Below are positions 692-57,064 of a stretch of 64,000 nucleotides of DNA, piece by piece. How positions within the stretch are numbered: position 1 is the first letter of the stretch; the number at the start of each line of letters is the position of its first letter. Origin of the DNA: Epiperipatus broadwayi (lineage: Eukaryota; Animalia; Onychophora); assembly GCA_028023455.1 (NCBI GenBank), contig JAQFVV010000003.1:19344001-19408000 (forward strand), in the 5' to 3' direction. The notes under the pieces were generated by a model. It made no database searches. It worked only from the letters and a program-made list of their open reading frames with translations, and was not told the origin of the DNA. The position numbers and the translations under genes were made by a program.

Positions 692-3150
692 CACTAATCT
701 GACTAAGGATAAATTCCTAATATCCACTCTGTATATTCTTGGCATTACAGCTGTTATTATGGGATAATTTGAATAGTAAATGAACTTGGATAAGCTGCTT
801 ACCAAATACCAGCCCTTTTGATAAATGTATTGGTTTTTACTTCTGAGCTTCAGTTTAAAAACACCATGTCTTCATTTTTGGCTGTCTGGCAATTCTTAAC
901 CTAGATATATGTTGGGTTTTTTCGAAAGCATGAATATTGTGTGAGAGAATATTCATTATCTTTTCTATTTACAATCATAACAGACAAAAATAAAATTATG
1001 GCTGGAGGTTACAAAATTATAAACCAAGTTAGCAGTTGGCAAGGGAGAAAGTGCAAAGATTTCGTGGGTTATGATCCTTTATTTAGCTATTTACAATAGT
1101 AAAACATGAATTAAATGAAACAATTGATTTGAAAAAAGGACATATACTTTATTATAAAGGCACAAATATTGGAAACATAAATAGATTAAGATTTATAATA
1201 AATAAAAAAATGGAAAACAATATTGTTGAGATTGATCATATTCTGGCAAGATTAGTTATTATGGAAGTTACCAAAGATATACAATTCAGATTTAGGCTCC
1301 AAACAAGTTCTTATAGCGATGAAGTAAAGGATTTCCATATAAATGTATAAATACTTTTGACCAATATAAACATTTTAAAATCATTATGGAAGACTTTAAT
1401 ACCTGTGGATAAATTTGGATATCAAGAAAAAAATGAATAAAGATATGGATATATAGATTTTGATGAAAAAGAAAATGTATATATATTTCTTTCTGAAAAA
1501 AATAAAAGCGAAAATGGACCCAAAAGTATCCAAATAAAAGCACAATAAATTTAATTATATTTTGACTAACTGAAAATATGTATTTCAAGACTGTAATGCA
1601 TTTGATATAAACAATACAGGAACTAATCATGGATTAATAAAATAAAAACATATTAATAATGGAAAGCTAGACAAACAAAGGGTATTAAAAAAAAGACCGT
1701 ATTAACAAATGGTATTTCTAAACTTGGAACTTGAAAATAATTTTAAAATATTAAGAGACTTTGATATTGAATTAGATTTGAACTGGATAAATATACTAAC
1801 AAATGTTACTTAGATAAGTGATACAAAAAAGTGGCAATTGTCTAATGTACCAAAATAAAGCAATATATGAAGGAAAAAAGCAATATGAAAACATTAAAAA
1901 AATGATATAATAAAAAAAATATAATGGTAAATTGACAAGAAAACTTATAAAAGAGAACAAAACATTTCAAAAGCATAACATAACATTAAGGCATTGGAAG
2001 AAAAGTTGTCTCAGCAATAAGAAACATAGAATAAAAAATCAAAATAGCTTCTACAGTTATAACAACATATTTTGAAATGTCAAATTTTCTAAATAAAAAA
2101 ATGACATATATAATTAAATCTATGAAAAATAAAAAAAGTTCTAGGAAATAATGGACTTATTACTGAAGTTTTTTAAAAGAATACTTAAGAAAGATGTGAA
2201 TGAAGATATTAGAAATTACAGATCCATCAATTTTTTTTATATCAATTCTCTATAAGATCTTTACTAAGATAATTACAAATTGTCTTTAGAGAACTAAGTA
2301 CTCAATTTCAACCAAAAGAATAAGCTGGATTTAAAAGTAATTATACCATAGTAAATCATATATCAAGCATTACAAAAAAAAATTAGTGTAAATCTCAATG
2401 AGGAATGGTTGTAAATTATAAAAATGCATTTGATTCTAGGAGCATTTCCAGGTGATTAAAGAATAATGTCAAATTCTGAAGAATATTTATTAAAAAGCCA
2501 CAGCAATGATTAGATTACATGAAAACCCTAAAATGAATAACATTGATAAGGAAGTTTGTCAGGATAATTCCATAATTTCAAAACATTTAACAATAGTTTT
2601 AGGAAGAGTATTTTGTGGATTAAAATGATAGGGTTTAAGAAATACAAAATAATTGATGAATACTTAAGTCATTTTGAAGATGATGTGAGTGCTTTACATT
2701 TACAAACAATACAAAATTCATTAGGAAGTTTGAGTACTGGAGGTGACAGACTTGATTTGCAGTCCATGGATCTTGACCTACATCAAACTATACGGGCCAT
2801 CAGATTATTAATATATATATAGAAATACAATGGATGAAATTAATAATAAAATAAAACTTGGCTGGACTGCATTTGATAATAAAAATATTAAAATTTCCAA
2901 TGCATTTAAAGACAAAAATATTTAATAAATATGTTTTATCACATATAAATAAGACTTGAATGCTTAATAGCAGAGTAATCAAACGATTTCAGATCAAAAG
3001 CAAATTACATGGTTGAAATAATAAATACATATCACAGTCATCATTAAAAGATTTAAGAGGTTCAAATAGAATCCAGCTGAACACACATCTAAAAAAGATG
3101 AGTAAATGTACAATTAAAATCTTAAACTGGATTAAACTTGAAAGAGATTT
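692..3150 (+). mobile_element. Decayed, internally deleted RTE-clade LINE (same family as 53257-57210)
   Basis: Colinear nucleotide similarity to the reverse complement of the 53-57 kb element. Matching parts are the 5' UTR (700-1050), endonuclease (TATATTTTGACTAACTGAAAATATGTATTTCAAGA near 1556) and RT (GATATTAGAAATTACAGA near 2204), plus a W.AGH-like remnant near 3065. No intact ORF. Confidence 0.8.
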
Positions 3151-3713: not shown

Positions 3714-5049
3714 CTATTTCAATGAGTAATAAAAGTACTCTAAAACCATATAATCTAAGAGAATGACATATCTTTATTCTTTTTATTTTAACATGTATAA
3801 AATTTCTACTTTCACGACTTCCTTGGGGAAATATATCACCCACATACCAAAAGCAACAATAATCTAATCAACAAATTTCATATTTTTCATTTTAAAAAAA
3901 AGCAAATAATATAATGTATTTAAAAAATAGGTCTGAAAATAATATATTTATCAAACAAACAATGATTGAAAAATAAATATTTTCAATAAATAAGATGAAT
4001 GCAAAAATGCTAATTTAATTTCTTTTAGAATGTTTGTATAGTTAATACTTATTGAATATATTTGTTTTTCATTAATTGTTTCTTCAGTAAATAAATTATT
4101 TTTAGAGTTTTGATTTTTTTAAAAAAATATGAAATTTATCAGTTAGCTTATTCTTATCTTTTTTAGTATGTGGATGATATTTCCATCAATAGATAGAACA
4201 TATATGTATCTAGAACCCATAAATCTTCGTATCCATACTGTTACTGATTCAAATTACAGTTTAATTGCTAAGTCTATAATAATGAAATATGTACTTGATA
4301 GTTTGGTATTCAAGATTTGCATTTTGTTTTTTTTATTTGCTTCACACGAATAATCCAATGACTAACTGCCAAAATAATTTATTTATTTAATAATATCACA
4401 TCTGATAACCTAAAGTTAAATACTGATTGATTTTAAGATCGTAGCATCTCATTAAAAAATACTCTGAAGAAATTTTTAAAAAATTCTCCAGAACCTTTAT
4501 GTAATAATAAAGGAGATTCTACATCTCATTTTCACACAATGCTTCAACAAAATAACAACTCTATATACAACCAATTTAATTAAAGTCATTATATCTCTGA
4601 AATACCATTCTTTTCAAACTTCTTAAATGCAATAGCAGTACAGTCAATTTCATATTGCCCTGAAATTTCCAAGTCTGTCTTTCTATCCACAAAGCTACTC
4701 AGAATATTTAAACCAATTCACATTCTCATGTTGGCAATCATTCAAACCAAAGGTCGCTAAATTTTTCTTGCTAAAAATGTTTATTCCATCACTGGCTGAT
4801 AAAACACTAGAATTTTTTGAAAATTAATTACTAAACAAAATTCTTTATGTAGTCAAAATAAGAGTCATAGATCAATTCATTTTAAGTGCTGGCTCTGGCT
4901 AAGCATTTATCATAAAGCTTGTAGAGGAATTGGCAATCCTCACTGTTTAAAATTCTTTATGGATTGTATTAAGACATTAACAATATTTTGTAGTTAAACA
5001 TCTTAAATTTTAAAAAATAACTTCATTCGCATACTGCACATTAGAAAAA

Positions 5050-10700: not shown

Positions 10701-11317
10701 TACAGGTGATACCAAAACATTTTCTCTATCTTAAATGTCTTTGAATATTATCATTCAAAAAAGACACACTTTAATATAGCAGAGCATTAAGTTTTTATAT
10801 TTTTTCTGCAAAAAAGTCAGACTAAGAAAAAGTTGTGGACAGACTTCTATAATATTATTGTCTTTTTAATTTTGTTTATAAATATTTGATTAATTAAATT
10901 AATAAATAATTTGGACATATGAATAATTAATAAATTATACAACTGTGCTAATAAAATATTATGGCAAAGTAACTATTGCTAAACCTATAAAATAATTGGA
11001 TTTGTCAGTAAATGCATTAGTGAATTAAAAAAACCAGTCTAATTTATTTAATGGCAGAAATCCAGTCACTATAGTTCCATTACTGTGGGGTATTACTATA
11101 TAATCAATGGTTAAAAAAAAAAAAGTTAAGTTGTACAGAACAAGAACAAAATGCTTTTAATAAAAGATAATTTTTCATAAACAGTGTAGATAATGATGCT
11201 AAATCTAAGGCTTCATCAGTGAAATATCATACTTTTCCCTGTACTATAAAAATACCATAAAAACTAATATATAAAAATAGGTAAAATCAATTACTATTTC
11301 ATGCAATTATAATTTAA

Positions 11318-11812
11318 ACCACTAAACATCACATGATCACTATTTCTTATGCTTGCTCATAACTATTATTAAAACAGGCAAAACTCTCCATACAGTAGTG
11401 TTACTCAGTGCAAGCCAGAGTAATCGATGGATACCAGAAGACTTGTGCATAAAATCCCTATCTAGGGCCTACTCATCCAATATCTCCAGACTAGTTTCTG
11501 GCTTGTGGCCTTCGTCAGTGAGGAGCCTTGGATCTGAGAGCACTACACCTAGATCTTAGGATCTAATGCAACCCTCCAGAAGCCATCTTTTATTTCTACT
11601 TAATTACAAAACTATGAGAATAGATCTAGGTGTAGTGCTATCAGATCCAAGGCTCCTCATTGATGAAAGCCAAAAGCCAGATACTAGTCTGGGGATATTG
11701 GATGAGTAGGCACTAGATAAGGATTTTATGCACAAGCCTTCTGGCGTCTTTTGATTACTCTGGCTTGCACTGAGTGGCACTACTGTATGGAGAGTTTTGC
11801 TTCTTTTAATAA
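11318..11812 (+). mobile_element. Non-autonomous hairpin element (leader + 191-bp inverted arms + 65-bp spacer) with 14-bp flanking direct repeat
   Basis: Arms 11366-11556 and 11622-11812 show about 20 mismatches in 191 nt. Leader 11318-11365. Flanks CAATTATAATTTAA (11304-11317) and CAATTCTAATTTAA (11813-11826). Four more family copies occur in the window. Confidence 0.85.
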
Positions 11813-12469
11813 CAATTCTAATTTAAATATTAAAACTCACCATAATGATGGATGGTGAAGGGTAATGTTGATTCTAGGATCACAATGAGATTGCTATTAT
11901 TAGGATGAAATATTGTATAGCAATGAAATGGATTTCACTATGCATTGCTATAAGTGACTGTTTGTTCACTTACATACTTGTGTAATAATTTAATCAATTT
12001 TATTATAAATATTTAAGTGTTGACATATATTTTAGATATATTACTTACATACATTTAAGAACGTGTTTTATAATTATATATATATATAGTAGTGTGCGTG
12101 AGTGTAGTTGCAGTTATTTCAATATTGATGTATTATTTATTGGAAAATTTAGCATTCAACAGCAAAAAAGAAGACATATATAAAAAAAATTTTTTTTTGT
12201 TAAATTGACAGCATATTTATCAACATGTTGAAACAGAAACTGAGTAAAGAAATGTTTATGGTTGAGAATTAATATGGTATAAGAGGGTATTTATTGTAAT
12301 TATGGCAATTCATTAAAAAAAATAGCCAAGTAGAAAATTAAAATGTAAGAAGAAATTTGATTAGACTTGTAAAAGAAATCAATCTTTAGGAGTTACCTTC
12401 ATATAGAATTTGAAATCAAATAAGTTATTAGAGTGAGTAAAAAGTATTAAAAAATCCACTGCAGATGGT

Positions 12470-16870: not shown

Positions 16871-17311
16871 AAAAAAATGTATATTGGATGGAGGATACTT
16901 TAATTACAAAAAGTTATTAAAAAATTATCTTGCACACTACGCAAACATGTGAAGCTCAATATTAAAAGAATTATCAGGCTGAGCACTTTCGGGAAGCTTT
17001 AGTTCCTATATTCATAGCCTATCTTGGGAATATCAGCTTGAGTTGTGATTTAAATAACTGGGTAATAATTTATGCAAATTTATTCAATGTCTTCATATAG
17101 TTCACTTTCTAGAGATGGAAAAGCACGATTCTTTCCAGACTATATGAAGATATTGAATAAATTTGCATAAATTACTGTCCAGTCATTTAAAATCACAACT
17201 CAAGCTGACACTCCTAAGATAGGCTATGAATATGGAAACTAAAGCTTCCTGAAAATGCTCAGCCGGATAATTCTTTTAATATTGAGCTTCACTTGTTTGC
17301 GTAATGTGCAA
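16871..17311. mobile_element. Foldback insertion: about 175-bp inverted arms with one-sided leader
   Basis: 16929-17100 is the near reverse complement of about 17139-17312. Candidate TSD GTAGCAACTTACTAC (16856-16870) / GTTGTAACTTACTGC (17312-17326), 12 of 15 identical. Confidence 0.75.
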
Positions 17312-17656
17312 GTTGTAACTTACTGCTCAAAGGTGAAGTAGAAACAAGGATTTTATTTCAATATTATAAAAAACTATCATGAATATTATTGAAAAAAAAA
17401 AATTAATCACTAAAGTTTTATACTTTTTTTGATTACATAGATATAGTCCAAATATAAATTTAACTCTCAAAATAACTTAATTATTGTATAATCAATGATA
17501 TTAAAATTAATAAGTTGATTATTTAATATTTGTATTTATATGTTTAAGTTTTCAAAAGTCTATGAAGCAGCAGCAAAGACATTGGAAAGTGATTAACTTA
17601 TACATTATTAATATATTTAAGTTTGATATATCTATTTTACATATAGTCCATAATTA

Positions 17657-18570
17657 ATAATCAATTAATTTTACTAGCGCAATATCAGATTGTAATTCTA
17701 TTTAGAAGGTAATAAACCTTCCTAGCTAGCACTGTTTATGATATTAAATCAGTGATGTTAAATGCAAGAATACTCTTGGTCCAGCCACAAGATAAAGACT
17801 TTGAGAAAATAAGAATGTCAGTCTTATTTTCTCATCTAAATGCATTTATATAGGCCAATCTTAAGTGTCTTCAAATGAGAATGTGAATATATTAAATCTT
17901 TCATGTTATATCCATTTAATATTATATATAGTGCTAGTGAGGAAGATTTATTATCTTCTAAATAGAATTACAAACTATACTACAATAGTAAAATTCACTG
18001 ATTATTAAATTATAATATTTCATAAGTGTTAATAAGATTATTAAAACAGATAAATGTAAAGTGAATGATTTAATATGTTCATGCTCTCATTTCCAGAAAC
18101 TTAAGATTGGCAAATATAAGTGCATTTAGATTTGAAAGTAAGATGGTTGGGCTTATTTCTCAAAGACTTTATCTTGTGGCTGGAATAAGAGTATCCTAGC
18201 ATTTAACATTGCTGATTTAGTAAGTATGGTGCTAGTGAGGAAGGTTTATTGCTTTCTAAATAGAATTACAATCTGACACTGTGCTAGTAAAATTGATTGA
18301 TTATTCCATAGTTTAACATCTAATATTAGCATGAAGTAAATTATAATATTTCAAAAGTATTGAGAAGATTATCAAAAGAAATGGATGTAAAGTGAATGAT
18401 TTAATATATTCAAGTTCTTGTTTCAAGACACTTAAGATTAGGTTTGAAAACAAAATGGTTCTCAAAATCTTTATTTTGTGTCTGGAACGAGAGTATTTTC
18501 ACATTTAACACCACAATTTAATATTATGTATGGTGCTACTGAGAAAGATTTATTACCTGCTAAATAGAAT
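17657..18570. mobile_element. Inverted-plus-tandem about 300-bp unit with perfect 15-bp flanking direct repeat
   Basis: Direct units start at 17931, 18229 and 18533 (partial). 17657-17915 is an inverted copy spanning a unit junction. TATAGTCCATAATTA occurs at 17642-17656 and 18571-18585. Confidence 0.85.
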
Positions 18571-18912
18571 TATAGTCCATAATTATAAATTTAAATACAA
18601 AAAAAAAAAAAACTTTCAAATAATAAAAATGTGTCATGACATCCATTGGAATGTTATATTTTGAGGTTTCTCTCTGTAAATAAATATGTTGTTAATTACA
18701 ATTATTTTGTTTCTTTATCACAGAATGATATCATAAACAATTGTTAAAAAAAAAAAAACAAACATGTAAGCACAAAATGTTTATAAAGATATATTACACA
18801 AATGATTGCCACTATATCAATGAAAACTTTCCTGATTTATTTACTTTTGTTTTCCTGCACTCAACTATTACAATTAATTGCTATTTCTATTCACTTGTAT
18901 CTAACCACTTAC

Positions 18913-19336
18913 CAGAAGCCTTGTCTCCACAAACTACACAAAGTTCAAAAGTATTTCGTTTATCTAAAGATGATTTGGCTCCAAATTCATTTTCTTTCAT
19001 TTTAGCCAAGATTTCTACAGGAGCTTGTAATTTGGCTGCCCAGTCAATACCACCCATTGGTGTAGTTACCATGGTTGGAGTAGTTACAATAGCAATGGCT
19101 GGGCTACCGGCCAAAGCTTGACTCAAAGTCATCATGTTAGAATTTGCAGCAATAGCCGGGCTTCCCGTGACAACAACATGACCAGATACCATCTGACCTG
19201 TTTCTGTGACAACTACAGTGGTTTCTGCATTCTCAAGGGATCTCTGATTCCCGCTCATCTTCACCCCCATAGGCTGGACGATTGTAACGGTGGTAGGAGT
19301 GGAAGAAGAATGGTGCAACTCATCAAGAGATGCCAT
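18913..19336 (-). CDS. Hr78: NR2C/TR2-TR4/Hr78-family nuclear receptor, coding exon 1 (A/B region and start of zinc finger 1)
   Basis: ATG at 19336 has an in-frame TGA upstream in the same exon. The ORF ends ...FELCVVCGDKAS G|gtaagt (phase 1), joining in frame to the 3713 acceptor across a 15,199-bp intron. Confidence 0.93.
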
Positions 19337-19375: not shown

Positions 19376-19511
19376 CTGAAAATAATATAAAATAAAATGT
19401 GACATCTTACTATGTATTACTGTTGTTTCCTGCTTTTTACATGTGTGTGTGCAATATGAGATGTAACAAGATACCATCTATGGAGTAAAATATGTATTAA
19501 TATCATAAATT

Positions 19512-19773
19512 TATTCTAGTCAATTATAAAAATTGAAATAAAACACACAAGTACACAGATCCATATTTTCAAAAATGTCAATTACTTACCAGTTATTGCT
19601 TGTATTCAGCCTTGTCCTTAATAACATGATTTATTTATATGTATATATAATTAATTTATGAAGGACAAGACTGAATACAAACCAAACAATAACTGATAAG
19701 AAATTGATATTTTTGAAAATATGGTCTAGTGTACTTGTGTGCTTTATTTCAATTTTGATAATTGACTAGAATA
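19512..19773. repeat. Inverted repeat, about 110-bp arms
   Basis: TATTCTAGTCAATTAT...TCAGCCTTGTCCTT versus AAGGACAAGACTGAATAC...TAATTGACTAGAATA. No clear TSD. Confidence 0.9.
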
Positions 19774-21099
19774 TATATATATATAGCATTCCTAAAGAAA
19801 CTATTTAATGAAATAATAGGAATTATAAAAAAACACTTTTAAGATATGGATAAATATATATACTTAAATAATACCATATGATTCTAATTTAATTATCAAT
19901 TTCTACATGGTAATCCTCAACATCTCTACAAATCTCAAAGCAATCAACTGTTTTGCAAGAGACATGTTCAGGCAATTCAGTAATACAATTTTAAAAATCA
20001 GTTATACAGTTAATTCTTCTATAGTATGTGGCCCAGAATGGTTTAGCATAATGATAGAATGGTAGACACTGGAGATCAAAATCCATTAATCATGATTTAT
20101 CTCTTTCATTTTTGATACTCAAATTTCTTACAAACTACAATTACTTTTTTATGGTAAACTCAAATTAAATTAAACATTATGTAAAAAATAAAAATAAAAA
20201 CAACTAAGGATATTACATCAAATGAACATGCTACCCATAATCGAAATATTCCATGATTAATCCAATAATTGGAAAAAAAGATTATTGAGGATGAGTGAGT
20301 GATGTAATTTAATTACGAGTGACAAATAAAACAAAATTACATAAGATAAACTTACATGTACCATATTTATTTACTCATAAATCAGTATCTGCTTTTTTTT
20401 CATATTAGTTTTTAATTATAATATGTAATATGGTGTACTTTTTAAAAAATGACCATTGAATGCACCAATTTGGAAATCAGTTTATCAAAAAAAGTAAATA
20501 AATATTTAATAATTAATAAAATGTAATTATAAAAAAAATTGATTCTTATAAGTGGGTCTCTAAATTTTCAAATATGATTTGACATATATAACCAAACGGT
20601 CAATAAAAATATACATAAAATCTCTTATATTTTATTTGAAAAATTATTAAAGAAATAGTTGGTTTAAAAAAAAAAACACCATTTGTGACAACAAGAGTTC
20701 TGACAATTAATTAACTATTACCAGTTGTAGAAAAAAAAAGAAACTTTTCATTGTGTCAAATTTTCTCTATTTTCTTAATAAATTTTCTTATTTGAATTAA
20801 TGTAATATATAATATTAGATTACAAGTATAATTTAGTATACTTGGAAATTAGATATGCATCGGCTGTATGAGATAGAGTCGATAGCTGAAGGGTGCTTGA
20901 AATTTGTGTTCAAATCCTCTACAAATAAATGTAAGATGTAGTTTATTATTTTCCTAATTCTTTTTTTTAATTTAAAAAAAAAAGATATTTAATTTTATCT
21001 TTATTTCCTTAATAACACAAATCATCACAAAACAAAAAGTTTCGTTTTCTTTTCCACATCTGTTAAATTGAGATAAAAAATATGCTGGTAATAGATGCA

Positions 21100-22090: not shown

Positions 22091-22707
22091 TATTAGATGT
22101 AATATGTTGGACTATATATCCATCATCTATGAGTGAATGTTGAATGTATAGAAAATTTTAAACTTTCTAAATACAAACAACTTGTTCACATAGAAGTCAA
22201 ATTTGTACCTTTAGATTTTTGAATACCAAATTGAAGGCAAACGCTCTAACCAACTGAGATATCCTGTCAAAGGCAACAGATAGTAGAAAATTGATATATT
22301 TATATGTGAGAGTTGGTTCAAATTCTCCTGAGTCTTTCAATTTTTTTTAAATTTAATATTAATTTTTTCTAAGAGCAAGATTAATTATAGGCTTCTATAC
22401 ATACACAATGTATGGAAGCCTCTAATTAATCTTGCTCTTAGGAAAAATTAATATTAAATAATAATAAAACTAATTAACCTTGAAAAAAAATTGAAGAACT
22501 CAGGAGGATTTGAACCAACCCTCACATATAAATATATCAAATTTCTACTATCTATTGCTTTTTACAGAATAGCTCAGTTGGTTAGAGCATTTGCCTTAAA
22601 TTTGACATTCAAGAATCAAAAGGTGTGAGTTGTTTGTATTTGGAAAGTTTAAAATTTTCTATACATTTAACAGATGATGGAAATAGTCCAACATATCACA
22701 TCTAATA
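22091..22707. repeat. About 620-bp foldback containing tRNA A-box and B-box motifs
   Basis: Arms mirror around a centre near 22400. Contains TAGCTCAGTTGGTTAGAGC (A box, about 22571) and its mirror GCTCTAACCAACTGAG, and GGTTCAAATTC with its mirror. The end motif GATGATGGAAATAGTCCAACATA recurs at about 27568 and 51343. Confidence 0.85.
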
Positions 22708-24738: not shown

Positions 24739-24797
24739 TTATTAAAACAGGTAAAACTATCCATACAGTAGTGCCACTCAGTATCATGTGATGCTTT
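24739..24797 (-). mobile_element. Short copy of the 11318 hairpin family
   Basis: TTATTAAAACAGGTAAAACTATCCATACAGTAGTGCCACTCAGT followed by the reverse complement of the leader motif (ATCATGTGATGCTTT). No clear TSD. Confidence 0.75.
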
Positions 24798-26197
24798 CCT
24801 ACTGTTGAAACTATTTTTTTTAAAAAGTTTAACATTATCTATGCGTAATGCATCAGGAAAAAGACTTTGTTTTTCCTGTTCTTAAATGCTTTAAAAATTA
24901 CTCAAGAAATAACCTGGAGCAAAATAATTTGCAAAATTTATCAATAATGTTTATAGTAAATGATATTATGCAAATCTTAAATTATAAAACATTATTGATA
25001 AATTTGAAGCATTCAAAAATTGTAAAAAAAAAAAAATTTTTTACGGGTCTATTTAGTTCAAGTATTTGATGCTAGTAACAAAATTATTTGATGAATTTGA
25101 TTTTGGCAAATGCTTTTGTCCATGTTATTATATGTAATAGTATGTTGGAAATAACACCACCAAAACTACTGTATGGTGAGTCCAATGTATTATTACATCT
25201 AATAAACCATTACCACAAACCTTCAGGCAAATATTTTATTATATTTAAAATTACATGTATACATTTTTTTGTTGTTTTTGTGTTATAAATTTAAATAAAA
25301 AATATTGCGAATAATTGATTTCATTTAATGAAGACCCCCAAAATTTCTAGATCCTCAAACCCCTTAAAGGCTAAATTTACCACTGGGCATAAGTATAAAT
25401 AAGAAGTAATTACTACATATACTATTAAGCTTTTTATTTTTTAATTTGTGTTTAAAGACTTCATATTTGTTTTCCTTTTAAGTGTTTTATTATCTTCAAA
25501 TGATTACTTTACATGGTTTATTGCACCTGTCTTAAAAATTATATAAGACATTTACAATATTAGAAAAATTATTAATATTTTTCAGATTAAAAAAAAAAAA
25601 GTTCTCTTCAATAAGCCATTATCAAGACTTGACATTTATAAAAGGTCAGACTATTTTTAAATCCAGTAAAAAAACAGACAACTTAATATTAATTTTTTTT
25701 ATTCATCTTTTATATTTTTTGTTTTAGACAAAATATTTCTAAATTTTTTAAAACAAAAATTACACATATTCATTTAGGTTGCAAAATATTTTATTCCTGA
25801 AGACAATCAAATAGGTCAGCAATAACAGTACTAACATTATGGTTACACATCTTTTATATTTACTCAAGTATTTCACACCATATCATAGAGGAAGGAGTTA
25901 TATTTTAGTACAGTGGTAGCATGACCAGAATCTGTAGATATAAAGTCCTAGACTAAAGCTTAAACAGTCACTATGGTGGTGCTCAAGTGTTTTTCGATCA
26001 GTTAGACATATGTAACTGAAATTCAGTGTATCAATACAATGGCTGACTCAAAAGTTAAAAGCGCCTGGATCAAATTCAATCTGTCTTTTCTGGTGCTAAA
26101 ATATCATATGATTTCTTGACCACAATGTAATGATAATTTCCATATCTTTAAACATGCATATATATGTATATACAAAACAATAAAAATCACTAATGTG

Positions 26198-26262
26198 TTA
26201 TTAAAACAGGCAAATCTCTCCATACAGTAGTGCCACTCAGTGCAAGCCAGAGTAATCAATGG
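26198..26262 (-). mobile_element. 5'-truncated copy of the 11318 hairpin family
   Basis: 65 bp of the outer arm end, flanked by ATCACTAATGTG (26186-26197) and ATCATTAATGTG (26263-26274). Confidence 0.8.
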
Positions 26263-27331
26263 ATCATTAATGTGATTGTAAAGTTTAAAAGAAAAATTGA
26301 TAAAAGGCTACGAATAAAATATACATTTTCAGCTCAACTCAAAAACTTGTATTAAGTTATTCAATTAAAGTTCAGGAAACATGTTTTGAGAAAATAAATT
26401 GAATCTTTGCAGTCTTTTCAATTGAAAACCATATGAGTCCATCAGAAAAGGTCTAATACTGATAATGCAGTTACACAAAAGATTCAATTTCATTTTATAA
26501 AATTTCAGCATAAATGGAAAATTAAACTCAATGACTAACTTAAATTCGATCAGCTACAATGCACAAGCTGAACACTTTAATTTTGTTCCATGCATTTTAA
26601 TAAATTAGCCAATAAAAATCATTATTATTGAAAAAGTTTATAAGACTTGAAGTTCTAATTATTTGACTATGTTTGTTTAATAAATAATTAAAATCTAAAA
26701 CCCTTGACTTCTGTATTATGCAAACAAATGGAGAAAAAAAACCCGATGACATTAAAAAATAGTGTAGAACTAATTTGTGTTTATCCAGACCTATTGCAAG
26801 AGTAAGACAAAACTAGAGATAGTTGTTGGAGAAAGCACCATAATTATAGATATTTAGTCTTTTTTTTTTTAATGATAATAAATAAAACTCACGTTAAGAC
26901 AGAAACACATTACCTATGCATTCTTAACATGTATGCCTGCTCAATGTTGTTGAGCTTCATAATCCAGGAAATATTTCTGATAATTTGTTTATATATATAT
27001 ATATATGTTTATAGATTCAAATATTTGTCAAAAAGTTTATGATGATGGCATTTGACTTATGACTATATGTTGGAGTATTTTCATTATTTGAATTTATGGT
27101 CATGCTATAATGAATTAGGCTATTCTGCCAAAGGTTACTTGGCTAGACACATCTGAAAGTCTTTAATTTGATTCCCATATTATTACAATAAGTTAGGTCA
27201 GTATCATCTGAAGAAAAAAAGAGAATATCATTAAAATCAGTGTTTTATATTAATCTGTGTGTTACTACTAATAGTTGAATATAGTTGAAAAGTTTAAATA
27301 AAGTTTGGATTTTCCCAACATCATTTAACAA

Positions 27332-27544
27332 ACATCATATGATCATCATGTGATAATGCTTACACAAGCTGTTTGCACAGAGGCTAAATTGTCCATATAG
27401 TAGCACCACTTAGAAACTTGTCTGGAAATATTGGATGAGTAGGCACTAGATAGGGGTTTTATGCATGAACCTTCTTGCATCCATTGATTACTCTGGCTTG
27501 CACTGAGTGGCGCTACTGTATGGAAAGTTTAGCCTCTAAGTACA
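27332..27544 (+). mobile_element. Internally deleted copy of the 11318 hairpin family
   Basis: Leader ACATCATATGATCA, about 35 bp of left arm, then about 120 bp of right arm. Flanked by CATTTAACAA at 27322-27331 and 27545-27554. Confidence 0.8.
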
Positions 27545-30500
27545 CATTTAACAATTAAAACTTGATAATGGAAATAGTCCAATATATATTTATAATCATT
27601 CACACACACACACCCTCAAACCTCATATATATATATATTAGAATAAATTTTTGATAAGAGCAAGATAGTATGCATTCTTACAAATCTAAACAAACAATTT
27701 AATTAATAACGACATTATTTAAAAAATTAGGTGGATTACTTTTATTTCAAGTTTATTATTCTAATTTTAATTTGTATTATTTGTTGAATTTTTGTTTTAA
27801 AAACAAGTAGACATGTACATATAAATTTTGGATTTATTCAAAAATTAATTAGAATTGTCTTGATTTTCATCTATGCCAAAAGAAAAGTTAAAGAAGCTTT
27901 TTACATTGCAAATGATCCCAGTGCCATTAATAGAAGAGAGGCATGCTTTGCTCTCTCTAAACAATGGACTAATTAAATATTCAAACTCATTTGCATATGT
28001 GTACAATAAATCACAACAGTATTCATTCACAAAGCTATGAGTATGAGATTCGAACATTAAATCTCGAAGCGCTAAGCAGACCTATTACACCTTATTTTAA
28101 GTATAATTATAGCTTCACTAACGCATGCGAAAAAAGTCGCATATTTATAATTGTAATTTACAAAATAACATTTAACAAAAATCATTAGAAGCACAATTGG
28201 GTATTATCAAATCATCTCAAATCATAATTAAATAACATGTATTACAAATTGTCAATGCAATATTATGATTATTAAATATTTAAGAGCTTCCCCAATATTG
28301 CCAGCAATGGTAATTAACACAATTAACATATTTTTTTTCCATTAAAGATAAGATTTCATTGGAACTTAATGCATGTGCTATGTGTGCATGTTAATTCACA
28401 TATAATACAGATTTTTCATAAGAAACAAACATGCGATGACATTATTTTAGTAAAGTATTATTTTGGTTTTTGTAAAATCAACAAATGAATTGAAGATGTT
28501 TCAAATGACAATGAGGTCAATTTTAAAAAATTTATCAATGATGAAAAATTGAAATGCAGCTGCTATGGAAGAACATGAGATCAGTTACGGTGAAAAAATT
28601 GGAGCAAGAGCTAGATATGTTATATAGATGAAAAGAAAATAGTATATTTTAATTAAAGATTTTGAATAATCAAAGTTACATTTATGCAAAACACCAATAA
28701 TTAGAAGAATTTTACAAGTCTTTACATGTGAATAATGCAAATTTTAATCCTCCCTAATATATATATAACAATTTCTTAAATATTTGCACAAATAGACACG
28801 ATTCACCATAATGAGATATAGATAGTAAATAGAAGATTTTCAGAACTTTTAGATATAAATATTGATACTTTGCTTGGTTTGATCAGAAATGAAATTTATC
28901 TAAAAAATACATAAAGAATTCTCATTAAAATTATCAATACTTACATTTAAAAGCTATGAAAATCTAATTAAAATCTTTGTGTGAGTGCTGTTTATTTGTA
29001 AAAATATTAAATTACGCATTTTTGTTATTATATTTTGCAAAATGAAATAACTCTGTCTGCTTTCTCACCATGAAGCAGTCACATATTTGATAAGTATGTG
29101 TAAAAGAAAACATAATAACAAACAATAGCTGATCGATCTGACATTCATTGAATTCAAATTTTATCTGCATAATTTTTTGCAATTTTTTTATTATTTTCAA
29201 GTTTATTATTATGTTATTACATATATCAATTTTTGGTAGTACATATTTCTGTGCACAGACTTAACCTAAAATGAAATTTATTAAATCAAATATTGTTTAC
29301 ATATGTAATATATCGACATTTTAATTTTATACAAAAAAATATCAAATATTAAGCCAAATATAGTACAAATATAGTGAATCAAAATAACGCAGCTCTGGGT
29401 TTTTTTTTCAGAGATAATGGCAAAATCTAGAGTTCAAGATCCACGGATCGTGATTCATTTCTGCACTTCTGATGTTTGATTTCACGAGAACCCCTGAGCA
29501 ATAAACTATTTGATTATTACAAAAACCCAAAACAAAACAATTACAGACATAAACATTTATTTGATTATTTACAGTTTGCAATACTATGCAGTATGATTGT
29601 TCTTAACAAGAGCTTTCTAATAAAATAAAAACTGTAATATAATTTTTTATGATAAATATTTGTATATTAATTACATATATATATATTTAGCCTTTAAATA
29701 TCACACATTACATACTATCAGGTATATAAAATAATAAGTTAATACATGTAGATTCAAACAAAAATTTTTATGTGAAGATTCCTAATTTAAGTAATTTAAT
29801 ATGTAGTGTTTTAATTTAGCACCATTGAACAAAGAGCAAATGGTTCCTGAATTGATTCCCAGATGCAAAGAAAAATAAGAAAAACAATTTAGTCCTTTGA
29901 ATATACAAACTATAGGTTTGATGTTATTATATGACATTACCTCTTTAGCAAATGAATATATGAATTTTTTATATTTTTAAAACATGAATGGATGAGATAA
30001 AGAGGTTTTCTAGATTAATCAAAAAAGAAAGCTATGAATTAAAAATAAAATAAAACACCATTAATCTTAAACCCTTGGAGTCATGAATTTTTCAAATGTC
30101 AAGAAGAGATCTTTACCCCCCCCCCCCTATTTTTAAATCTAAAATGTTAAAACTGTAAAAAAATTTTTTTACTATCCATAGAGTATAAATTTATTTTATT
30201 AATAATAATATAACACTTTAAATTACAATATCAATTTATAATTATTTATCAAACGTCGTTATTTCCCACTTTGATTCTGTTTATAAAAGTGTGTGCAAAC
30301 TAATTTATTTATTGTAAATATTAAAGATTGTAAAATTTTGTTCAGATAATAAAAAATTTTGAATTGGTATTCACATTAACGGTATTTTACCTGGTACTGA
30401 GTAAAATAAGACCATTACCACTTTGTAGATCAATAATGATTGAAAATAATATCTGTAATTCTTTAATGAGTACATTCGAACATATATTGAGAGTAAACAT

Positions 30501-36500: not shown

Positions 36501-38380
36501 GCAATATTAATATTTAATTCATATTTAAAGTGCAAAAATCATCCTCCTCAGTTATTCTGACAATTCAGAAAAACACCAGCATTTTAGCAGATGTAGGTTC
36601 ATACATAATAAAAAGTGTTTCAATAATAAGGACAACTAATATACTGATTTATCTTGATTAAAATATAAACATAATAACAATGTAATACAAGTGACATGAG
36701 TATAGGAACAGAACTCTGGAAAGACTCATAAGACACTTCATAAGAGGTTGACACCCACCATAAATTTATTATTAATTCTCAAGCTTTTTCTGCAAGCGCT
36801 ATTCCCTTTAATAAATATTTTATTCAATCCCATAAGTTTAATTTAAACATAGTAAAAATATAAATCATGAACCTCATATATAAGTTCATATAACAATAAA
36901 AATTAAAATTAATTCATTCTTATTTAAACACATAAATTAAAGTGTACAACATTTTTAGAATACTAAATATTATCTGTGAAATCAATGTAAAAATGTCTTG
37001 AACAATAAATACACATTACACAAAGTAATAATTATAAATTATAGCTGAATTCCATAGATGTGATTATATCCATTTGTTCTAGTTATTATGAGCACTTTTA
37101 AATTAATGAATTTTACATGGCTCCATGATTGAAATAATTCCAAAAGCATGACATGTAGAATTTAAATGAAACTGTTCTTCACAAGTTATTAAATTCTACA
37201 TTTTTATATAGCATTGTTCCAAGCTTATAATATCCAGGCTATATTAATTTATCTATCCACATTTAAATCTAGGAATACAATCAGAACAAAACAATTTAAC
37301 AAATCCACATTGGCGATAAAAATCAGAAAGTAGTTTTAGTTAATCGTTTAAAGGCTGTTATTATTATTCAAGTAGTAAACAAATTAAATAGTAAATACAT
37401 TACTGACAGTATACATTCAGATAAGATAGTCAATTCTTTATTATTTAAATGATACACAGAAATATTAAACCAGCGTTTCAATAAAATTTAACATTTAAAG
37501 TTGATTTTAAACCTCTTCTTTTTTAAAAATAAAGTTGTCATATCCAAAAAACTTCTGTAATTAAAATATTTATTTAATGTTGCCAATTTGTATGTAATAA
37601 AATATTCCAAAACATACTGACCTTCTGCTATTAATTCTACTTTTAAAGTTAAGCATTTTGACATATTCAAATGTAGATATTGAGAAAATTATTAGTGATT
37701 TGATCCACCGGGCCGGCAGACTTGAACAGATCATTTAAATCTAGCAACTCATACTATTATTAAATAACACCATTTTATGTTTAAATTCGTATAAAAATTC
37801 TTGGTTAATCCATTTGCTTATTATTTTAAAAAAATATGCTTAACATATTTTGCTTACATTTTATTCTTACACCATTTTTTTCTTAATAATAACCACAAAC
37901 ACTGACTTTCCCTGAGACGCTTACTGAAACGCACACGTTATTTTATATTTTTATCTAATAATTAAAAATTAGTTAAACAAATGGCTTTTGAATTTAAATG
38001 AAAATAATTTCTAAGATTATTTTAAATAAATAAGAATTATTATTATTTTTAATCACATTTTACTAAACTTGATGTGTGCTGTAAATTTCTTACAAGTTAA
38101 ACATATTTGACCCAAATCAGTGAATGGAAAAGGAGTAATTTTAAATACATTAAAATAATACAGGCAATAAGCAAGGTAAAATATTACTTATTCTCACCAA
38201 TAAATTATTTTGAATGCAAGTAAATAGTCTCTTGAGAATGCAAACCAAAGCAATCAAATCACCAAGACAGAGAAATTTTTAAATCAGTTCTATCAATATC
38301 TATATTTTACATTAAAATATAAGGTTAAAATATTAAATACTTGAAAATATTGCAATTAGAACTTAAAAAAGAGGGGTGGG

Positions 38381-38489
38381 GCTCATTACTATTATATTGC
38401 TGTGATATCTAAATATGGAAGGTTCCTCCTCCTCGAAGGAGGGAAAATCTTCCATATTTCGATATCGCAGCAATATAATAGTAATGAGC
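38381..38489. repeat. 109-nt hairpin
   Basis: GCTCATTACTATTATATTGCTGTGATATCTAAATATGGAAG pairs with CTTCCATATTTCGATATCGCAGCAATATAATAGTAATGAGC, with an inner TTCCTCCT/AGGAGGGAA stem. Confidence 0.9.
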
Positions 38490-38927
38490 TGCACATCCAA
38501 GTTTAAACTTGATAATGTTTTTGTCTGTTAGCTATTATAGCTTATAGTTGCAGTATTTGAAAATCATGTTATCAATTTCTCTTACCTAAATAATTTAAAT
38601 TAGTTATTCTGGCCTCAAAAATCACATTCAGATTTAGAAAACAAGCTGTATTAAGTAAAAAAAATATATATATAAAGACATTCCTTTATGTGTAAAATTA
38701 ACATAGTCTTCCATTCTTGTTTGCTTCAAACTGTTGAATGTCTCTAACAAAATACTGTAGTGCTTATTTTGATTTGTTAACAAATATTTTCATATTAGTA
38801 ATCATTTAACAAGTGTTAAGAGATATTTATTGGCACTGGGGGAGGGGTGGATATGAACCACTACAGAAAATGCCAAGTGAATAATGGAAAAGAAAATTAT
38901 GAATCAGTTATATAAATATGAATTTAC

Positions 38928-45671: not shown

Positions 45672-47030
45672 AGTGATGTGATGTATTTGGCTTCTCCTTA
45701 AACGAAGTCAAGAATATCTCAGCAACTATGCCCAGATAAACCTGTTAGCCACTTTATTTTCCATTCCCCACTCTAAGTCTTCCCATATTCTGCACCATCC
45801 CATTTCCACAACATGATCTTTGTCAACTCTATGGCCTTTAAATCTAAATCCCCCTTATCTTTTTGCAAACCCAGCATAAAAGCTAATAACTCACTTTCTG
45901 TATAGTCACTTTGTTCATACCTATTCTCCCATAACTTCTTTATCTGTACCCTTTCTGCTTTCAAGCATTTACATTCAATGAATAGATGCCTAATACTTTC
46001 TATACCTTCCTTACATAATTTGCACGCTAAATCACCCATAGTTTTCCATTTACATTTATATTCTCTTGTTGCTAAAGATCCTGTTCGAGCCTTAAACAAT
46101 AAACTACTTTCCTTACTATTATCATAAATTAACTCACTTCCAATATTCCGTTTACTTCTATATATATATATTTAAACTCTTTTTACCCTCCATACTACTT
46201 CAACATCTCTCCAACTCCCTATTTTTTATTAATGCTTCTATTCTTTTATCCTATCCCTTACCACTATAACACTCAACAATCCTCCTAACACAATCATCCC
46301 ATCTTTTATACAAGTATACCGATATAAATTCTTTATCCAAATCTTTTGCATACCGCATTATCTTTCTCACCCATCTTGTTACCTGCCCTTTACTCATAAC
46401 CCAATTAACCACTATTTTGGCTATTCTTTTATTATCCATAAACTGCAACCTACCAAACATTTTCATTTTACTTTTTGCATCTCTCATATAGAAACTTGAC
46501 CATCCCATTTCTCCTTGAATTGCCTTCTTTGCCGTCCACACCTCTGCATCTAATGCATGTCTTCCTACTTCCCTTTGTACTTTCTCTAAATAATCTAAAA
46601 TCCTATTACTAACACATAATGCATCATTACCATATGTTAACCCTGCTACTGCAACTCCCTTCCATACAATTCTAGCTACATCATATTTATTATATGAAAA
46701 TACTGTTAGTTTCTTTACCAAACCCTTTCTTTTCTTTGCTTCATTTACTAATTTTTTCTCCCATTCATCCAAGCAATTTTCCTGATTACATAAGATGATT
46801 CCCAAATACCTATATCTATCCACCACACTTAACTTTATATCCCCCAATAAAAAATCTACATCCTCTCTTTCCCCAGTATTAACCATCATTATATTTGATT
46901 TTTCTTCACTAAATTTAATCCCCATCTCTTTACCCACCCTTGCACATGTCCTCAACATAATATCCATATCTTCTCTTCTTTCTGCACATAAAAGGATATC
47001 ATCCGCAAAAAAAAAAAGACCCGACAAAGT
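45672..47030 (-). mobile_element. 5'-truncated non-LTR retrotransposon (RT C-terminus and CCHC zinc knuckle)
   Basis: ORF 46251-47027 has FADDILL and YRYLGI. Downstream ORF 45773-46099 has LFKARTGSL and CKLCKEGIESIRHLFIEC. The 3' end may be the CATCACATCAC repeat near 45672. Clade not assigned. Confidence 0.88.
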
Positions 47031-52500: not shown

Positions 52501-53892
52501 ATTCTATAAAGAAATGTAATACTATTCTTACATGGAAGATCACTGTCTTATTATACCCTCAGCAGGACCACGGCAGTGAATATTTTCCCAATCACACTAT
52601 TTTTTTAAAAAAGATCGCAACAAAATGATAAAGCTCCATTAATTTTTAATTTCCAGAAAGGGAGAGACCTAATTTACCCATGTTATTTAGGGCTCTAAAA
52701 TCACCTAAAGCTGATGACTCTTCTGATATCTTGACTTCAAAAGATCAATAGTCTGACCATTTTATTAAAAAAAAAATACCACAATAAGTTATTACTATTA
52801 TTTTTGAAGAAAGCAAATAAATGAAAACACGCCCACATATAGACAATAGTTATTATATATGTTAATGTGCTTTCTTAATTTATTATTCATAACTGCATTA
52901 TTATTATTTTTTTAATTTTTATACTATAATCTGAATATATACTATACTTGTTAAAAATAATGTACTGTGTGTATATATATTTATAAGTATTGTACACTTA
53001 TAGAACTATAGTAAACAATATACAGTGTATTATAAACAAAGCACAAACTATTTTCCACTAATTCATAGCCATCCTCTAGAAATCTTGAAACAAAATATAA
53101 TAGATGTGGGATTTCATCCTATAGAGTTAATATGATTTCCATAAAAGCAAACTGGTAATAATTAAGGCAGTTTATCAGATGTTCTTATTAAAATCACTAG
53201 GCTGAGTCACTCTGTGTGGCATTATTTTCTTTATAATTTAAATACTGTATACATTTCATCATCATTTTCAACCACTATCAATCCACTGCAGAATGAAGGT
53301 CTCTCCAAATTCAATCCATCTTCTCCTATCTTTAGCTTCTCTTCTCTACACCATTCCTGCACACTTTCTTATTTCATCTATCCATCTCACATGTGGTCTC
53401 TTTCTGACTCTTTTACAATCTCATGGAATCTAGTTTAAAATTTCAATTGTCCATCTATTATCATCTCTTCTAGCAATATGTCCAGTCCAACTCCACTTCA
53501 GTCTTTTAATTTTTTCCGAGGTCAGTAACAGCTGTTTGTTCTCTTAGCCATATATTGCATTTTCGATCTCTTCTTGTTACTCCCAACATGCATATCTCCA
53601 TACTTCTTTGAGTGGTCTGAAGTCTCTGCATTGCTCTTCTATTAAGTGTCCAAATCCCAGATCCATAAGTAAGAACTGATAAAATACATTTATTAAAAAC
53701 TTTCCTTTTCAAACACATAGACATATTTTCTTTTAGTATCAAGTTATTTCTACCAAAGCATTCTAACCAAGTTTAATTCTATGATTAATTTCATCCATTA
53801 TGTTTCCATCTGTATTAATAATCTGAACAAGGTATATGTAGCTGTTAACTTCTTTTAACTCATTATAATCAATCTTTATTTTCATATTTTGA

Positions 53893-54503
53893 TATTTTAA
53901 ACAGCATTAAGCTGTTGCACATGTGCTTTGCAGATTTTAGCTATAAATCACTGAATACTAACACTTCAAACACATGATAAAGTCTTTGGAAAAGATAGAG
54001 TGGCCATCTATCTTTTCGAACCCAAACACTTTTGTATGGGCAAATCTTAATTGTTTGAAAGTGAAAGCGTGAAAATATTAAATAATCATTTTAAATTACT
54101 TTTATATGCTTGAATGAATGACGCTGGTGAAATTTACTAGAATTTACGATACGTCATTCTTATTTGAAAATAAATGTATATAAATAAATCAATTATTTTA
54201 TATAGCGCGATGTTTATAAACTGTAATATTTTAAACAGCATTAAGCTGTTGCACATGTGCTTTGCAGATTTTAACTATGACTGAATACTAACACTTCAAA
54301 CACATGATAAAGTTTTTGGAAAAGATAGAGTGGCCATCTATCTTTTTGAACCCAAAGGCTTTTGTATGGGCAAATCTTAAGTGTTTGAAGTGTTAGTATT
54401 CAGTCATTTATAGTTAAAATCTGCAAAGCGCATGTGCAACAGCTTAATGCTGTTTAAAATATTACAGTTTATAAACATCGCGCTATATAAAATAATTGAT
54501 TTA
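53893..54503. mobile_element. Direct-plus-inverted foldback insertion inside the RTE, with 13-bp flanking repeat
   Basis: Palindrome 54182-54506. 53893-54055 is a direct copy of about 54228-54385. TTTCATATTTTGA occurs at 53880-53892 and 54504-54516. Confidence 0.85.
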
Positions 54504-55230
54504 TTTCATATTTTGAGAAAATCAATTGAACATTACTTTAGTCTTTTTAACATTTATCTTTAGTCCTATTTTCATCTGATTACTCCTGCAACATTTCCTG
54601 CAGTTCTAAAGCATTATTAGTAAAAACAACTACATCATCTGCAAAATCTAAATGACTTAAATAATCTCCATTTACTCCTTTAGATTCCCATTTTAATCCA
54701 CAAAATACTTCTTGCAGCACTGCTGTAAAATGTTTTGGAGATATGGAGTCATCCTATCTTACACCCTTCTCAATGTTGACTTTCCTAGTATCATTATGTA
54801 ATCTAATTGTTGCTGTTGCATTTTTATAAATATTCTTTAAAATATGACAATATCCTGGATCTATACCTTGATGATCCAATGCTTTAATCACTGAAATGTT
54901 TATAAAATCAAATGCATTTTCATAATCTACAAATCCAAAGCATAAAGGCAACTCATATTCATTTGTCCTTTCTATAACTTCTCTCAATACCTGGATATGA
55001 TCTACTGAATTAAAACCACTTTTAAATCCAGCTTGTTCTCTTAGTTGATAGAAATCCAATGTTCTTTGTAGACGAGTTGTAATTATCTTGGTAAAATTTT
55101 TGTATAAAACTGATAAAAGGCTGATAGGTCTGTAATTTCTAATATCTTCTTTATCACCTTTTTTAAATATTAATATTGCATTCTCTCAATCATCTGATAC
55201 ATCTTTATCATTTGGACATTTGGTATATAA

Positions 55231-55331
55231 GCCAATAAACATCATATGATCACCATTTCTTATGCTATCCATTGATTACTCTGGCTTGCACTGAGAGGCA
55301 ATACGTATAGAGAGTTTTGCCTGTTTCAATA
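55231..55331 (+). mobile_element. Leader-plus-3'-end copy of the 11318 hairpin family nested in the RTE
   Basis: Leader AAACATCATATGATCACCATTTCTTATGCT is joined directly to the outer 67 nt of the right arm. Perfect ACATTTGGTATATAA flanks at 55216-55230 and 55332-55346 duplicate the RTE codons for YTKC. Confidence 0.88.
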
Positions 55332-57064
55332 ACATTTGGTATATAACTTTACTAAAAAAAATTCTATTTCTTCACCTGCTTTTTTTAATATATCAATTAT
55401 AATTCCATTATTACGTGGAGCCTTTCCTTTCTTCATAAATTTAATTGCATATCTCATTTCTTCATTTAAAATTCTGGGCAATTCAGAAGATGTAATAAAT
55501 ATAGAAGGTACTTGATCTTTATTACTATATAATTCTTGATAGAAGTTTTCTACCCATTTCATGATGTCATCTCTCTTTTTAGTAATAATTCCATCTTTTT
55601 TTTCTTACTGCAGATATAAATTGCCTATCAATACCAAAATGTTGTTTTACACTCTTGAGACTTTTATTCTCTTCTACAGCTTTCCTCGCTAGTTCACAAT
55701 TATACTTTCTTATATCATTTTCAACTCTTTTCCACACAATTTTACAAAATTCGAGGTATTCAATCCTTTTTAATATATCATTTTTGTATATCGTCATATT
55801 TCTTCTTTTCTTCATAAATTCTTTAGTCTCAGTAGAAATTTTATTGGTCAATTGGTTCTTTTTTCTACCAGCTATCTTTGTTGCAGTTTTTAAAAGTGTA
55901 TCAGTTATTATTTTATTAATTTCATTCAAATCTGAATCATGTTCAAAATCTACTAATACTTGAAACTGATTTATAAGTTCTAACTTAAATTCATAGAATG
56001 TTTCTGAAGATTGGGAATATCAACTGTAAATATTGTTTTTCTTAATAATTTTGTCTCTCTAGTTTTGCATTAACATATATCTTACATCTTACTAATCTAT
56101 GACCACTTCCTGTGTTAAATTTATTAAGAACCTTACAATCTTGAAATATGTATTTTCTGTTAGTCAAAATATAATCCAATTCTGCTGTACCTTTATTTGG
56201 ATGCTTCCATGTCCATTTCCTTTTAACATTTTTCTCAAAAAAAGAATTCACAATATAAAGTTTTTCTTTTTCTGCAAACTCCACAAGTCTATGTCCTCTC
56301 TCATTTCTATTACCATAACCAAAATTACCTACAGCATTTTCATCTTTCATTTGTTTACCAATTCTAGCATTAAAGTCTCCCATAACAATTTTAAAATGTT
56401 GTTTACTCTGATCAAAAGCCTTTTGTACATCCATATAAAAGTCTTCTACTACTTTATCACTATGAGAACTTGTTGGGGCATAAACCTGAATTATGTGCAT
56501 TTGTATCTGCTATTAAGTTGTAAACCTAATCTTGCCATTCTGTCTGATACACCATCAATCTCCACAATGTTATTCTTCCACTTTTTATTTATAATGAATC
56601 CTACTCAATTGTATTTCCAATATTTGTGCCTTTATAGTAGAGTACATGCTCACTTTTAAAATCAATTGTTTCTTCACTTTTTCTTCTAACTTCACAAAGT
56701 CCAATAATGTTCCTTTATTCACTTCACTTGAAAGTGATCTGCAGTTGTAAGTACCTAAATAAAAAGTCATCATCAAATGGTGCCTGGGCCCACAACCAGG
56801 GATTCTTATCACCCTTCGCCTTCGGCCACCTACCACTGCCTTGGTTGGTGACTTTACAGCCTCCTGGGAATAAGGGCCATGATTTATTTTTGTCTGTCAT
56901 GATTGTATATATCTATTGGAAAAATATTTATCATTTACACATACATTCGTTCTGCTTTATCAGGAATCTGAGAAGAAAAACCATGGTGTTTCTTGATCTT
57001 AAACTCGGAGGTAAAAAGCCAATAAAATCACCATGCTGGCTAATGCATGTTGGTGAGCAGCCCA

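Follow-up and report, generated by a model that had tools for sequence, protein, structure and literature searches.

The hairpin at positions 11318-11812 of a 64-kb window (the whole stretch of Epiperipatus broadwayi DNA that was analysed) goes back to a single, old insertion of a non-coding repeat that is very abundant in this genome; it consists of two partial copies, placed head-to-head in the style of Penelope-like elements (PLEs). It is a real mobile element, and it is of a known kind. The repeat is about 450 bp long. Its spread probably involves an RNA intermediate, which a PLE enzyme turns into DNA at the target site. Below we describe the insertion and the tandem unit from which it derives, the architecture of its relatives in the genome, and the resident PLEs that leave the same footprint.

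Anatomy of the insertion and its repeat unit

The element spans 11319-11812 (494 bp; the first-pass annotation had 11318-11812, 495 bases) and lies within 15-bp direct repeats CAATT(A/C)TAATTTAAA at 11304-11318 and 11813-11827. A repeat search of the window delimits two arms of 196 nt, 11361-11556 and 11622-11817, with 89% complementarity. This insertion, hereafter copy 1, contains the following features.

11304-11318, unstranded: left target-site duplication (CAATTATAATTTAAA)
11319-11365, minus strand: tail, formerly read as a 5' leader; 47 nt of tandem-unit sequence from just beyond the ...TTTTAATAA end, in reverse complement
11366-11624, minus strand: inverted arm, 5'-truncated, unit positions 434 down to 178
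11483-11525, minus strand: hammerhead-like motif of the inverted arm (CUGACGA ... GAAAC ... GUC), with one helix I pair broken
11612-11632, unstranded: head-to-head arm junction with AGA microhomology; its sequence is nearly unique genome-wide
11625-11812, plus strand: direct arm, from the first start site and without tail, unit ~246 to 434, ending ...GAGAGTTTTGCTTCTTTTAATAA
11653-11695, plus strand: decayed hammerhead-like motif of the direct arm, its core mutated to TTGATGA and GATAC
11813-11827, unstranded: right target-site duplication (CAATTCTAATTTAAA)

The tail marks the second reverse-transcription start site in copy 1. The divergence between the two arms of one insertion ranges from 2.8% (in the loci L007 and L013) to about 11% in copy 1, indicating that the family has been active over a long period and that copy 1 is old.

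A search of the organism's own 5.6-Gb assembly returned 7,049 first-look candidates, many of them matching positions 1-305 of the query only. The family unit revealed by these loci is a non-palindromic, non-coding sequence of 441-458 bp; its copies are arrayed head-to-tail, and the array periods are 441 and 458 bp. L022:1101-1541 (minus strand) was taken as the reference unit. The fixed end reported earlier, ...GCCTGTTTTAATAA, is position 434 of this unit, and the next 47 nt, ending ...GATGTTTAGTGG, match the reverse complement of the supposed 5' leader. Therefore, the leader corresponds to the opposite strand of the unit sequence that lies beyond the 3' end. It is indeed shared among copies, but as a PLE-type tail in reverse and not as a 5' end. 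Likewise, the 191-bp hairpin that had been taken for the body of the family, and for its RNA, is replaced by a tandem repeat from which inverted copies arise at varying points.

The repeat is dispersed in very large numbers. An exact 25-mer from the arm occurs 60,253 times in the genome, against 0 for the reversed control, and a 15-mer from the tail occurs 189,522 times at up to one mismatch, against 78 for its control. On the first contig the copy density is about 6 clusters per Mb. The 3' end, described earlier as fixed, is nearly so within the window but ragged over about 10 nt genome-wide (unit positions roughly 424-436). Target and element frequently share a few bases at the join. The arm phylogeny is star-like in a nearest-neighbour analysis, in which the arms of L007, L013, L011 and L014b are mutually nearest relatives; aimed at the re-mobilisation of hairpins, the analysis was uninformative on that point.

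Neither poly(A) nor a microsatellite was present at any family end examined in the window and the fetched loci, and the repeat has no ORF, both in agreement with the first reading. Searched with Rfam, neither the window nor the full-unit loci matched tRNA, 7SL or 5S, even at E<=1, and ARAGORN made no call. A-box and B-box look-alikes in unit 60-135 are weak and were seen by eye only. The label SINE-like is not sustained, as the Pol III head from tRNA, 7SL or 5S was not found. A comparison of the unit with the rest of the window, including two LINE fragments, also produced no match.

All five copies of the family first listed in the window were found again at their places. The four besides copy 1 are as follows.

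24740-24793, minus strand: copy 2, a 12-nt inverted tail piece joined to about 43 nt from the end of the unit, with no clear duplication
26187-26274, minus strand: copy 3, a single 5'-truncated arm; 26198-26263 (the last 66 nt; unit 368-436) lies between 11-bp repeats TCA(C/T)TAATGTG
27322-27553, plus strand: copy 4, of a divergent subfamily and flanked by CATTTAACA repeats; its inverted arm, which bears the tail, starts at 27331, and its direct arm stops at 27542-27544
55217-55346, plus strand: copy 5, a 36-nt inverted tail arm (55231-55266) and the last 66 nt of the unit (55267-55332)

The clean 5' truncation noted for copy 3 is genuine. Copy 4 (27331-27544) has the same layout as the other composites and a flanking repeat of 9-11 bp, and copy 5, whose target is a LINE fragment, is flanked by perfect duplications of 14-15 bp. 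The leader AAACATCA(C/T)ATGATCA is seen in copies 1, 4 and 5, and copy 2 has a 12-nt piece of it. Four copies in the window thus carry flanking duplications (9-15 bp), as first observed. The accompanying rule that these begin with CA holds in the window and fails at most other loci; it was dropped after the genome survey.

The window has a GC content of 26%, and hairpin-shaped repeats are unusually many in it. A palindrome at 22207-22624, with 145-nt arms of 88% complementarity and a 128-nt spacer, contains tRNA-like pieces in its arms, e.g. TAGCTCAGTTGGTTAGAGC near 22561-22580, and probably represents another repeat family, related to tRNA and inserted head-to-head. A repeat of about 330 bp (53879-54506 and 17656-18600) forms direct tandem copies with an adjoining inverted copy, a tandem-plus-inverted layout like that of the studied family in a sequence unlike it. 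Further short palindromes lie at 498-686, 16929-17312, 19505-19780 and 38376-38494, with arms of 58-126 nt and 86-97% complementarity. The two LINE fragments are a C-terminal part of a reverse transcriptase with FADD (46251-47027, minus strand) and an AP-endonuclease-like part (55579-56500, minus strand). The latter is the insertion target of copy 5, and an inverted relative of that LINE lies at 1117-2873. At 18887-19336 (minus strand), an open frame closes with ...CVVCGDKASGK..., where a nuclear-receptor zinc-finger DNA-binding domain begins; it is probably an exon of a host gene.

Architecture of the insertions across the genome

The hairpin is made anew at each insertion, with a variable inversion point. 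We mapped onto the unit all 22 distinct composites of the fetched loci, which had been picked by similarity to the hairpin query. All 22 are head-to-head with their 3' ends outward. For at least 20, the outer ends fall into two classes, unit ~421-439 and ~29-49 of the following unit (mostly 44-47), with one end of each class per composite. As these two outer-end classes are about 50 nt apart, one end carries an extension of 47-53 nt and the other none. Exactly one end bears such a tail in at least 20 of the 22 composites, a count that is biased by the selection of the sample with the hairpin query. The arms measure 0.1 to 2.6 units, and whole composites or arrays of up to 1.9 kb are enclosed in a single duplication of 11-17 bp (mean ~13). 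When the flanks of different loci were paired as a control, 17 of 27 insertion duplications exceeded its 99th percentile.

Since the loci had been chosen via the hairpin query, pattern searches independent of structure were added. Among the first 100 genome places of an exact 25-mer, 14 close pairs have the (-,+) orientation and none has (+,-), and the eight short pairs among them show eight different spacings. The tail 15-mer gave seven close pairs in (-,+) and none in (+,-). Scored by exact matches, these unselected pairs, too few to decide the point, include two with one tail, none with both and four with none detected.

Over the fetched loci, the termini are asymmetric and the duplications variable in length, which runs counter to a DNA-transposon origin. 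Fold-back DNA transposons have symmetric termini and a fixed duplication length. What the family shares with Foldback elements and MITEs is the long inverted repeat containing tandem subrepeats. This likeness would speak for a DNA transposon of the fold-back or MITE type, or for a satellite that has undergone palindromic rearrangement. This explanation is already contradicted, and we give it almost no credence: the termini are not mutual inverted repeats, because the 47-nt tail is on one side only, the duplications are of 11-17 bp, single truncated arms carry duplications of their own, arm lengths and junctions vary, and the copies are dispersed at the density given above. The family is not a MITE, because its duplications vary between 11 and 17 bp, 5' truncation is common and its termini are not inverted repeats of each other; the earlier proposal of a non-autonomous retroelement inserted by target-primed reverse transcription is supported.

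The junctions bear on what kind of RNA is copied. The simple hairpins (n=11) have at least nine different inversion points or junctions. The copy 1 junction has three genome matches at up to one mismatch in 5.6 Gb, in addition to L002, which has a 5-nt deletion. Because the junctions vary and that of copy 1 is almost unique, the family does not have a hairpin as its body; copy 1 has a handful of siblings at most and is a single product out of a very large number. Copy 1, L002 and L004 do have one common junction with different duplications, suggesting that a hairpin copy may occasionally be recopied.

The first-pass annotation had proposed a SINE-like retroposon whose RNA is mostly double-stranded; in the corresponding model, a LINE copies a master RNA that is itself the hairpin of about 190 bp, through ordinary target-primed reverse transcription. 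The variable duplication length, the 5'-truncated copy 3, the nearly fixed 3' end and the junction common to copy 1, L002 and L004 would all fit such a master. It is largely refuted, and very improbable, given three matches of the copy 1 junction against at least 60,000 arm copies, the junctions that differ between hairpins, a unit that is tandem and non-palindromic, and the lack of a Pol III-type head and of poly(A). Moreover, the combination of a tail at one end with an inverted copy has been reported to be absent from LINE insertions (PMC8557442).

Resident Penelope-like elements and the hammerhead-like motif

The Pfam GIY-YIG model found 10,243 candidates in the genome. Intact PLE ORFs of 800-901 aa with YVDD and GIY-YIG motifs, belonging to three families that are 43-50% identical, were recognised by these motifs at the following places.

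L043, 1301-4003 and 4436-7138: intact PLE ORFs of the first family
L046, 4089-6743, minus strand: intact PLE ORF of the second family
L048, 4280-6679, minus strand: intact PLE ORF of the third family

A Pfam scan of the ORFs returned nothing, though the same GIY-YIG model had matched them in the genome search. Their identity as PLEs rests on the visible YVDD and GIY-YIG motifs and on their Atlas neighbours, which carry RVT_1 and GIY-YIG. L043 contains a perfect tandem with a period of 3,135 bp. In L048, a tRNA-like sequence lies at 3020-3099 (minus strand), about 1.2 kb downstream of the PLE ORF; it scores 28.1 bits with the Rfam tRNA model against a gathering score of 29 and has no ARAGORN call.

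The resident L046 family has the same insertion footprint as the repeat. Each of its head-to-head pairs (L049 and L034) has one end at 4932-4936 and the opposite end at 4984-4989, which leaves a 50-nt tail; duplications of 11-13 bp enclose the pairs. At 4880-4990 of the L046 reverse complement, the two alternative 3' ends fall at equivalent points of an internal duplication of about 50 nt (AAAAAGA(TT)ATGGTG(G)AAGATTT...), which may explain why two start sites exist.

This footprint also bears on a LINE reverse transcriptase as the mobilising enzyme, with the inversions produced by twin priming or template switching. Twin priming makes inverted 5' parts, and the outer end of such a part is an arbitrary internal position. 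LINE fragments are common in the window, and the family shares with L1 twin-priming inversions an inverted 5' part that stands beside a direct 3' part in one duplication. However, the outer end of the inverted part is here one of two fixed sites, so that the repeat has specific start sites at both outer ends; its arms overlap the same part of the unit, and it has a tail and no poly(A). In addition, no LINE sequence of the window matches the unit, whereas the exact footprint is found in resident PLEs. We therefore consider mobilisation by a LINE improbable and favour a PLE enzyme.

A sequence partner of the repeat was sought among the resident PLEs. Comparison by blastn of the unit with 12 GIY-YIG loci and 9 longer PLE loci (3-5 families) detected only neighbouring insertions of the family itself; between the unit and the 3' regions of the PLE families in these 21 loci, no sequence similarity emerged. 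With PLE proteins as queries, tblastn found no PLE coding sequence within 1.5 kb of the 22 family loci, nor any in the window. Because the unit has no similarity to the PLEs examined and no PLE coding sequence adjoins it, we infer the PLE partner from the footprint only.

The L046 PLE and the repeat also resemble each other in layout, each with a small hammerhead-type motif that precedes the first end by about 90-120 nt. The consensus of the repeat motif over 52 arm copies reads UCCUCA / CUGAYGA / A / GGC-CACAA-GCC / A / GAAAC / UA / GUC / UGGGGA, in which UCCUCA and UGGGGA would be the helix I strands, CUGAYGA the core and GGC-CACAA-GCC helix II, while helix III would be the palindrome ACUAGU. 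Helix II is closed by a G-C pair in 29 copies and by an A-U pair in 16, while 6 are mixed, a statistic inflated by kinship between the copies; the G-C and A-U forms represent one compensatory change. An extra A stands between 11.1 and G12, 3' of helix II. No match to the Rfam hammerhead models was obtained at the gathering score; relaxing the cutoff to E<=1 for 27 kb of loci, and to E<=10 for the 111 nt surrounding a consensus-like motif, gave none either. A strict motif scan of our own detected no intact hammerhead in the window. We call the motif hammerhead-like. Compared with the published PLE-type motifs (PMC4209133), it has the same unpaired base after position 9, the same G10.1-C11.1 pair and a palindromic helix III, and differs in the extra A before G12. 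A monomer cut at GUC is predicted to fold with z ~ -3.9 and 64% of its bases paired.

A motif common to the 3' regions of the L043, L046 and L048 PLEs, CTTGAAAA(A/T)GA...TCGAAACGTTG, is similar to the minimal hammerhead variant (U3-A8) published for the flatworm Cercyon elements. The core type is C3-G8 in the repeat and U3-A8 in the resident PLEs examined.

Two bolder readings of these data can be formulated. In the first, the hammerhead-like motif, with its A inserted between helix II and G12 and its compensatory change from G-C to A-U, would be a working new variant behind a family of over 100,000 copies, which PLEs would mobilise in trans without shared sequence. In the second, the four copies with the copy 1 junction would show that a fully palindromic copy can undergo a further round of retrotransposition. 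We think these readings unlikely.

Proposed insertion mechanism and comparison with known systems

Four features characterise PLE insertions: they are strongly truncated at the 5' end, contain partial tandems, adjoin an inverted copy that is itself 5'-truncated, and have a tail of 30-40 bp, often at one end only; with LINEs, these features are reported to be unseen (PMC8557442). All of these structural features are found in the family. In vitro, a purified PLE protein cleaved both DNA strands and extended them, and it began reverse transcription at two neighbouring internal positions of the RNA, between which the tail lies (PMC11167929). Animal retrozymes have been proposed as non-autonomous derivatives of PLEs (PMC7229834; bioRxiv 10.64898/2026.07.22.740005).

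Therefore, based on the composites of the repeat, the resident PLEs and these published systems, we propose an insertion cycle for the family. A PLE enzyme, composed of a reverse transcriptase and a GIY-YIG endonuclease, would carry it out: the endonuclease would cut both strands 11-17 bp apart, and DNA synthesis on the repeat RNA would be primed from each exposed 3' end. Synthesis would begin at either of two internal start sites, ...TTTTAATAA and ...GATGTTTAGTGG, which are separated by about 50 nt. The two cDNAs would grow towards each other, stop at variable points and be joined head-to-head. The product would be an inverted repeat of variable arm length with a tail of about 47 nt at one end only, inside one target duplication. 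When only one strand is used, a simple 5'-truncated copy such as copy 3 would result, and a multimeric or circular template would allow whole tandem arrays to be inserted at once. For this cycle we infer an RNA intermediate, mobilisation by PLEs in trans and, if the hammerhead-like motif is active, self-cleavage.

The repeat agrees with PLEs (Penelope/Poseidon, Neptune and Naiad) and their non-autonomous derivatives in its frequent 5' truncation and partial tandems, in the adjacent inverted copy that lacks its 5' part, and in the tail at only one end. Its target duplications are likewise AT-rich and variable, and a small hammerhead-type motif lies about 100 nt before its 3' end. It differs in having no ORF and no similarity to the resident PLE ends examined, and its tail of 47-53 nt is longer than the published 30-40. 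The animal non-LTR retrozymes (PMC7229834), namely newt satellite 2, Schistosoma Sm-alpha and the coral and mussel repeats, are likewise non-coding tandem units of a few hundred nt with low GC, with duplications longer than 4 bp and in coexistence with PLEs. The layout of the repeat motif also resembles their type I hammerhead, helix I being of 6 bp and helix III palindromic (ACUAGU), and its monomer is predicted to fold well. On the other hand, the unit of 441-458 nt is slightly above the reported 170-400, and the motif is non-canonical, with the extra A 3' of helix II, and is not recognised by Rfam. With respect to Foldback elements and MITEs, the repeat stands apart by its asymmetric termini, its variable duplications and its single truncated arms with their own duplications.

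These results explain why an AT-rich genome of 5.6 Gb is full of hairpins with long duplications: they are footprints of the Penelope type and call for no new class of element. The use of two RNA start sites and of both DNA strands by PLEs has been seen in vitro only recently (PMC11167929), and a large family of short, non-coding elements offers a convenient natural record of it. For the organism itself, the inverted insertions are likely to be a source of double-stranded RNA, and of errors in genome assembly.
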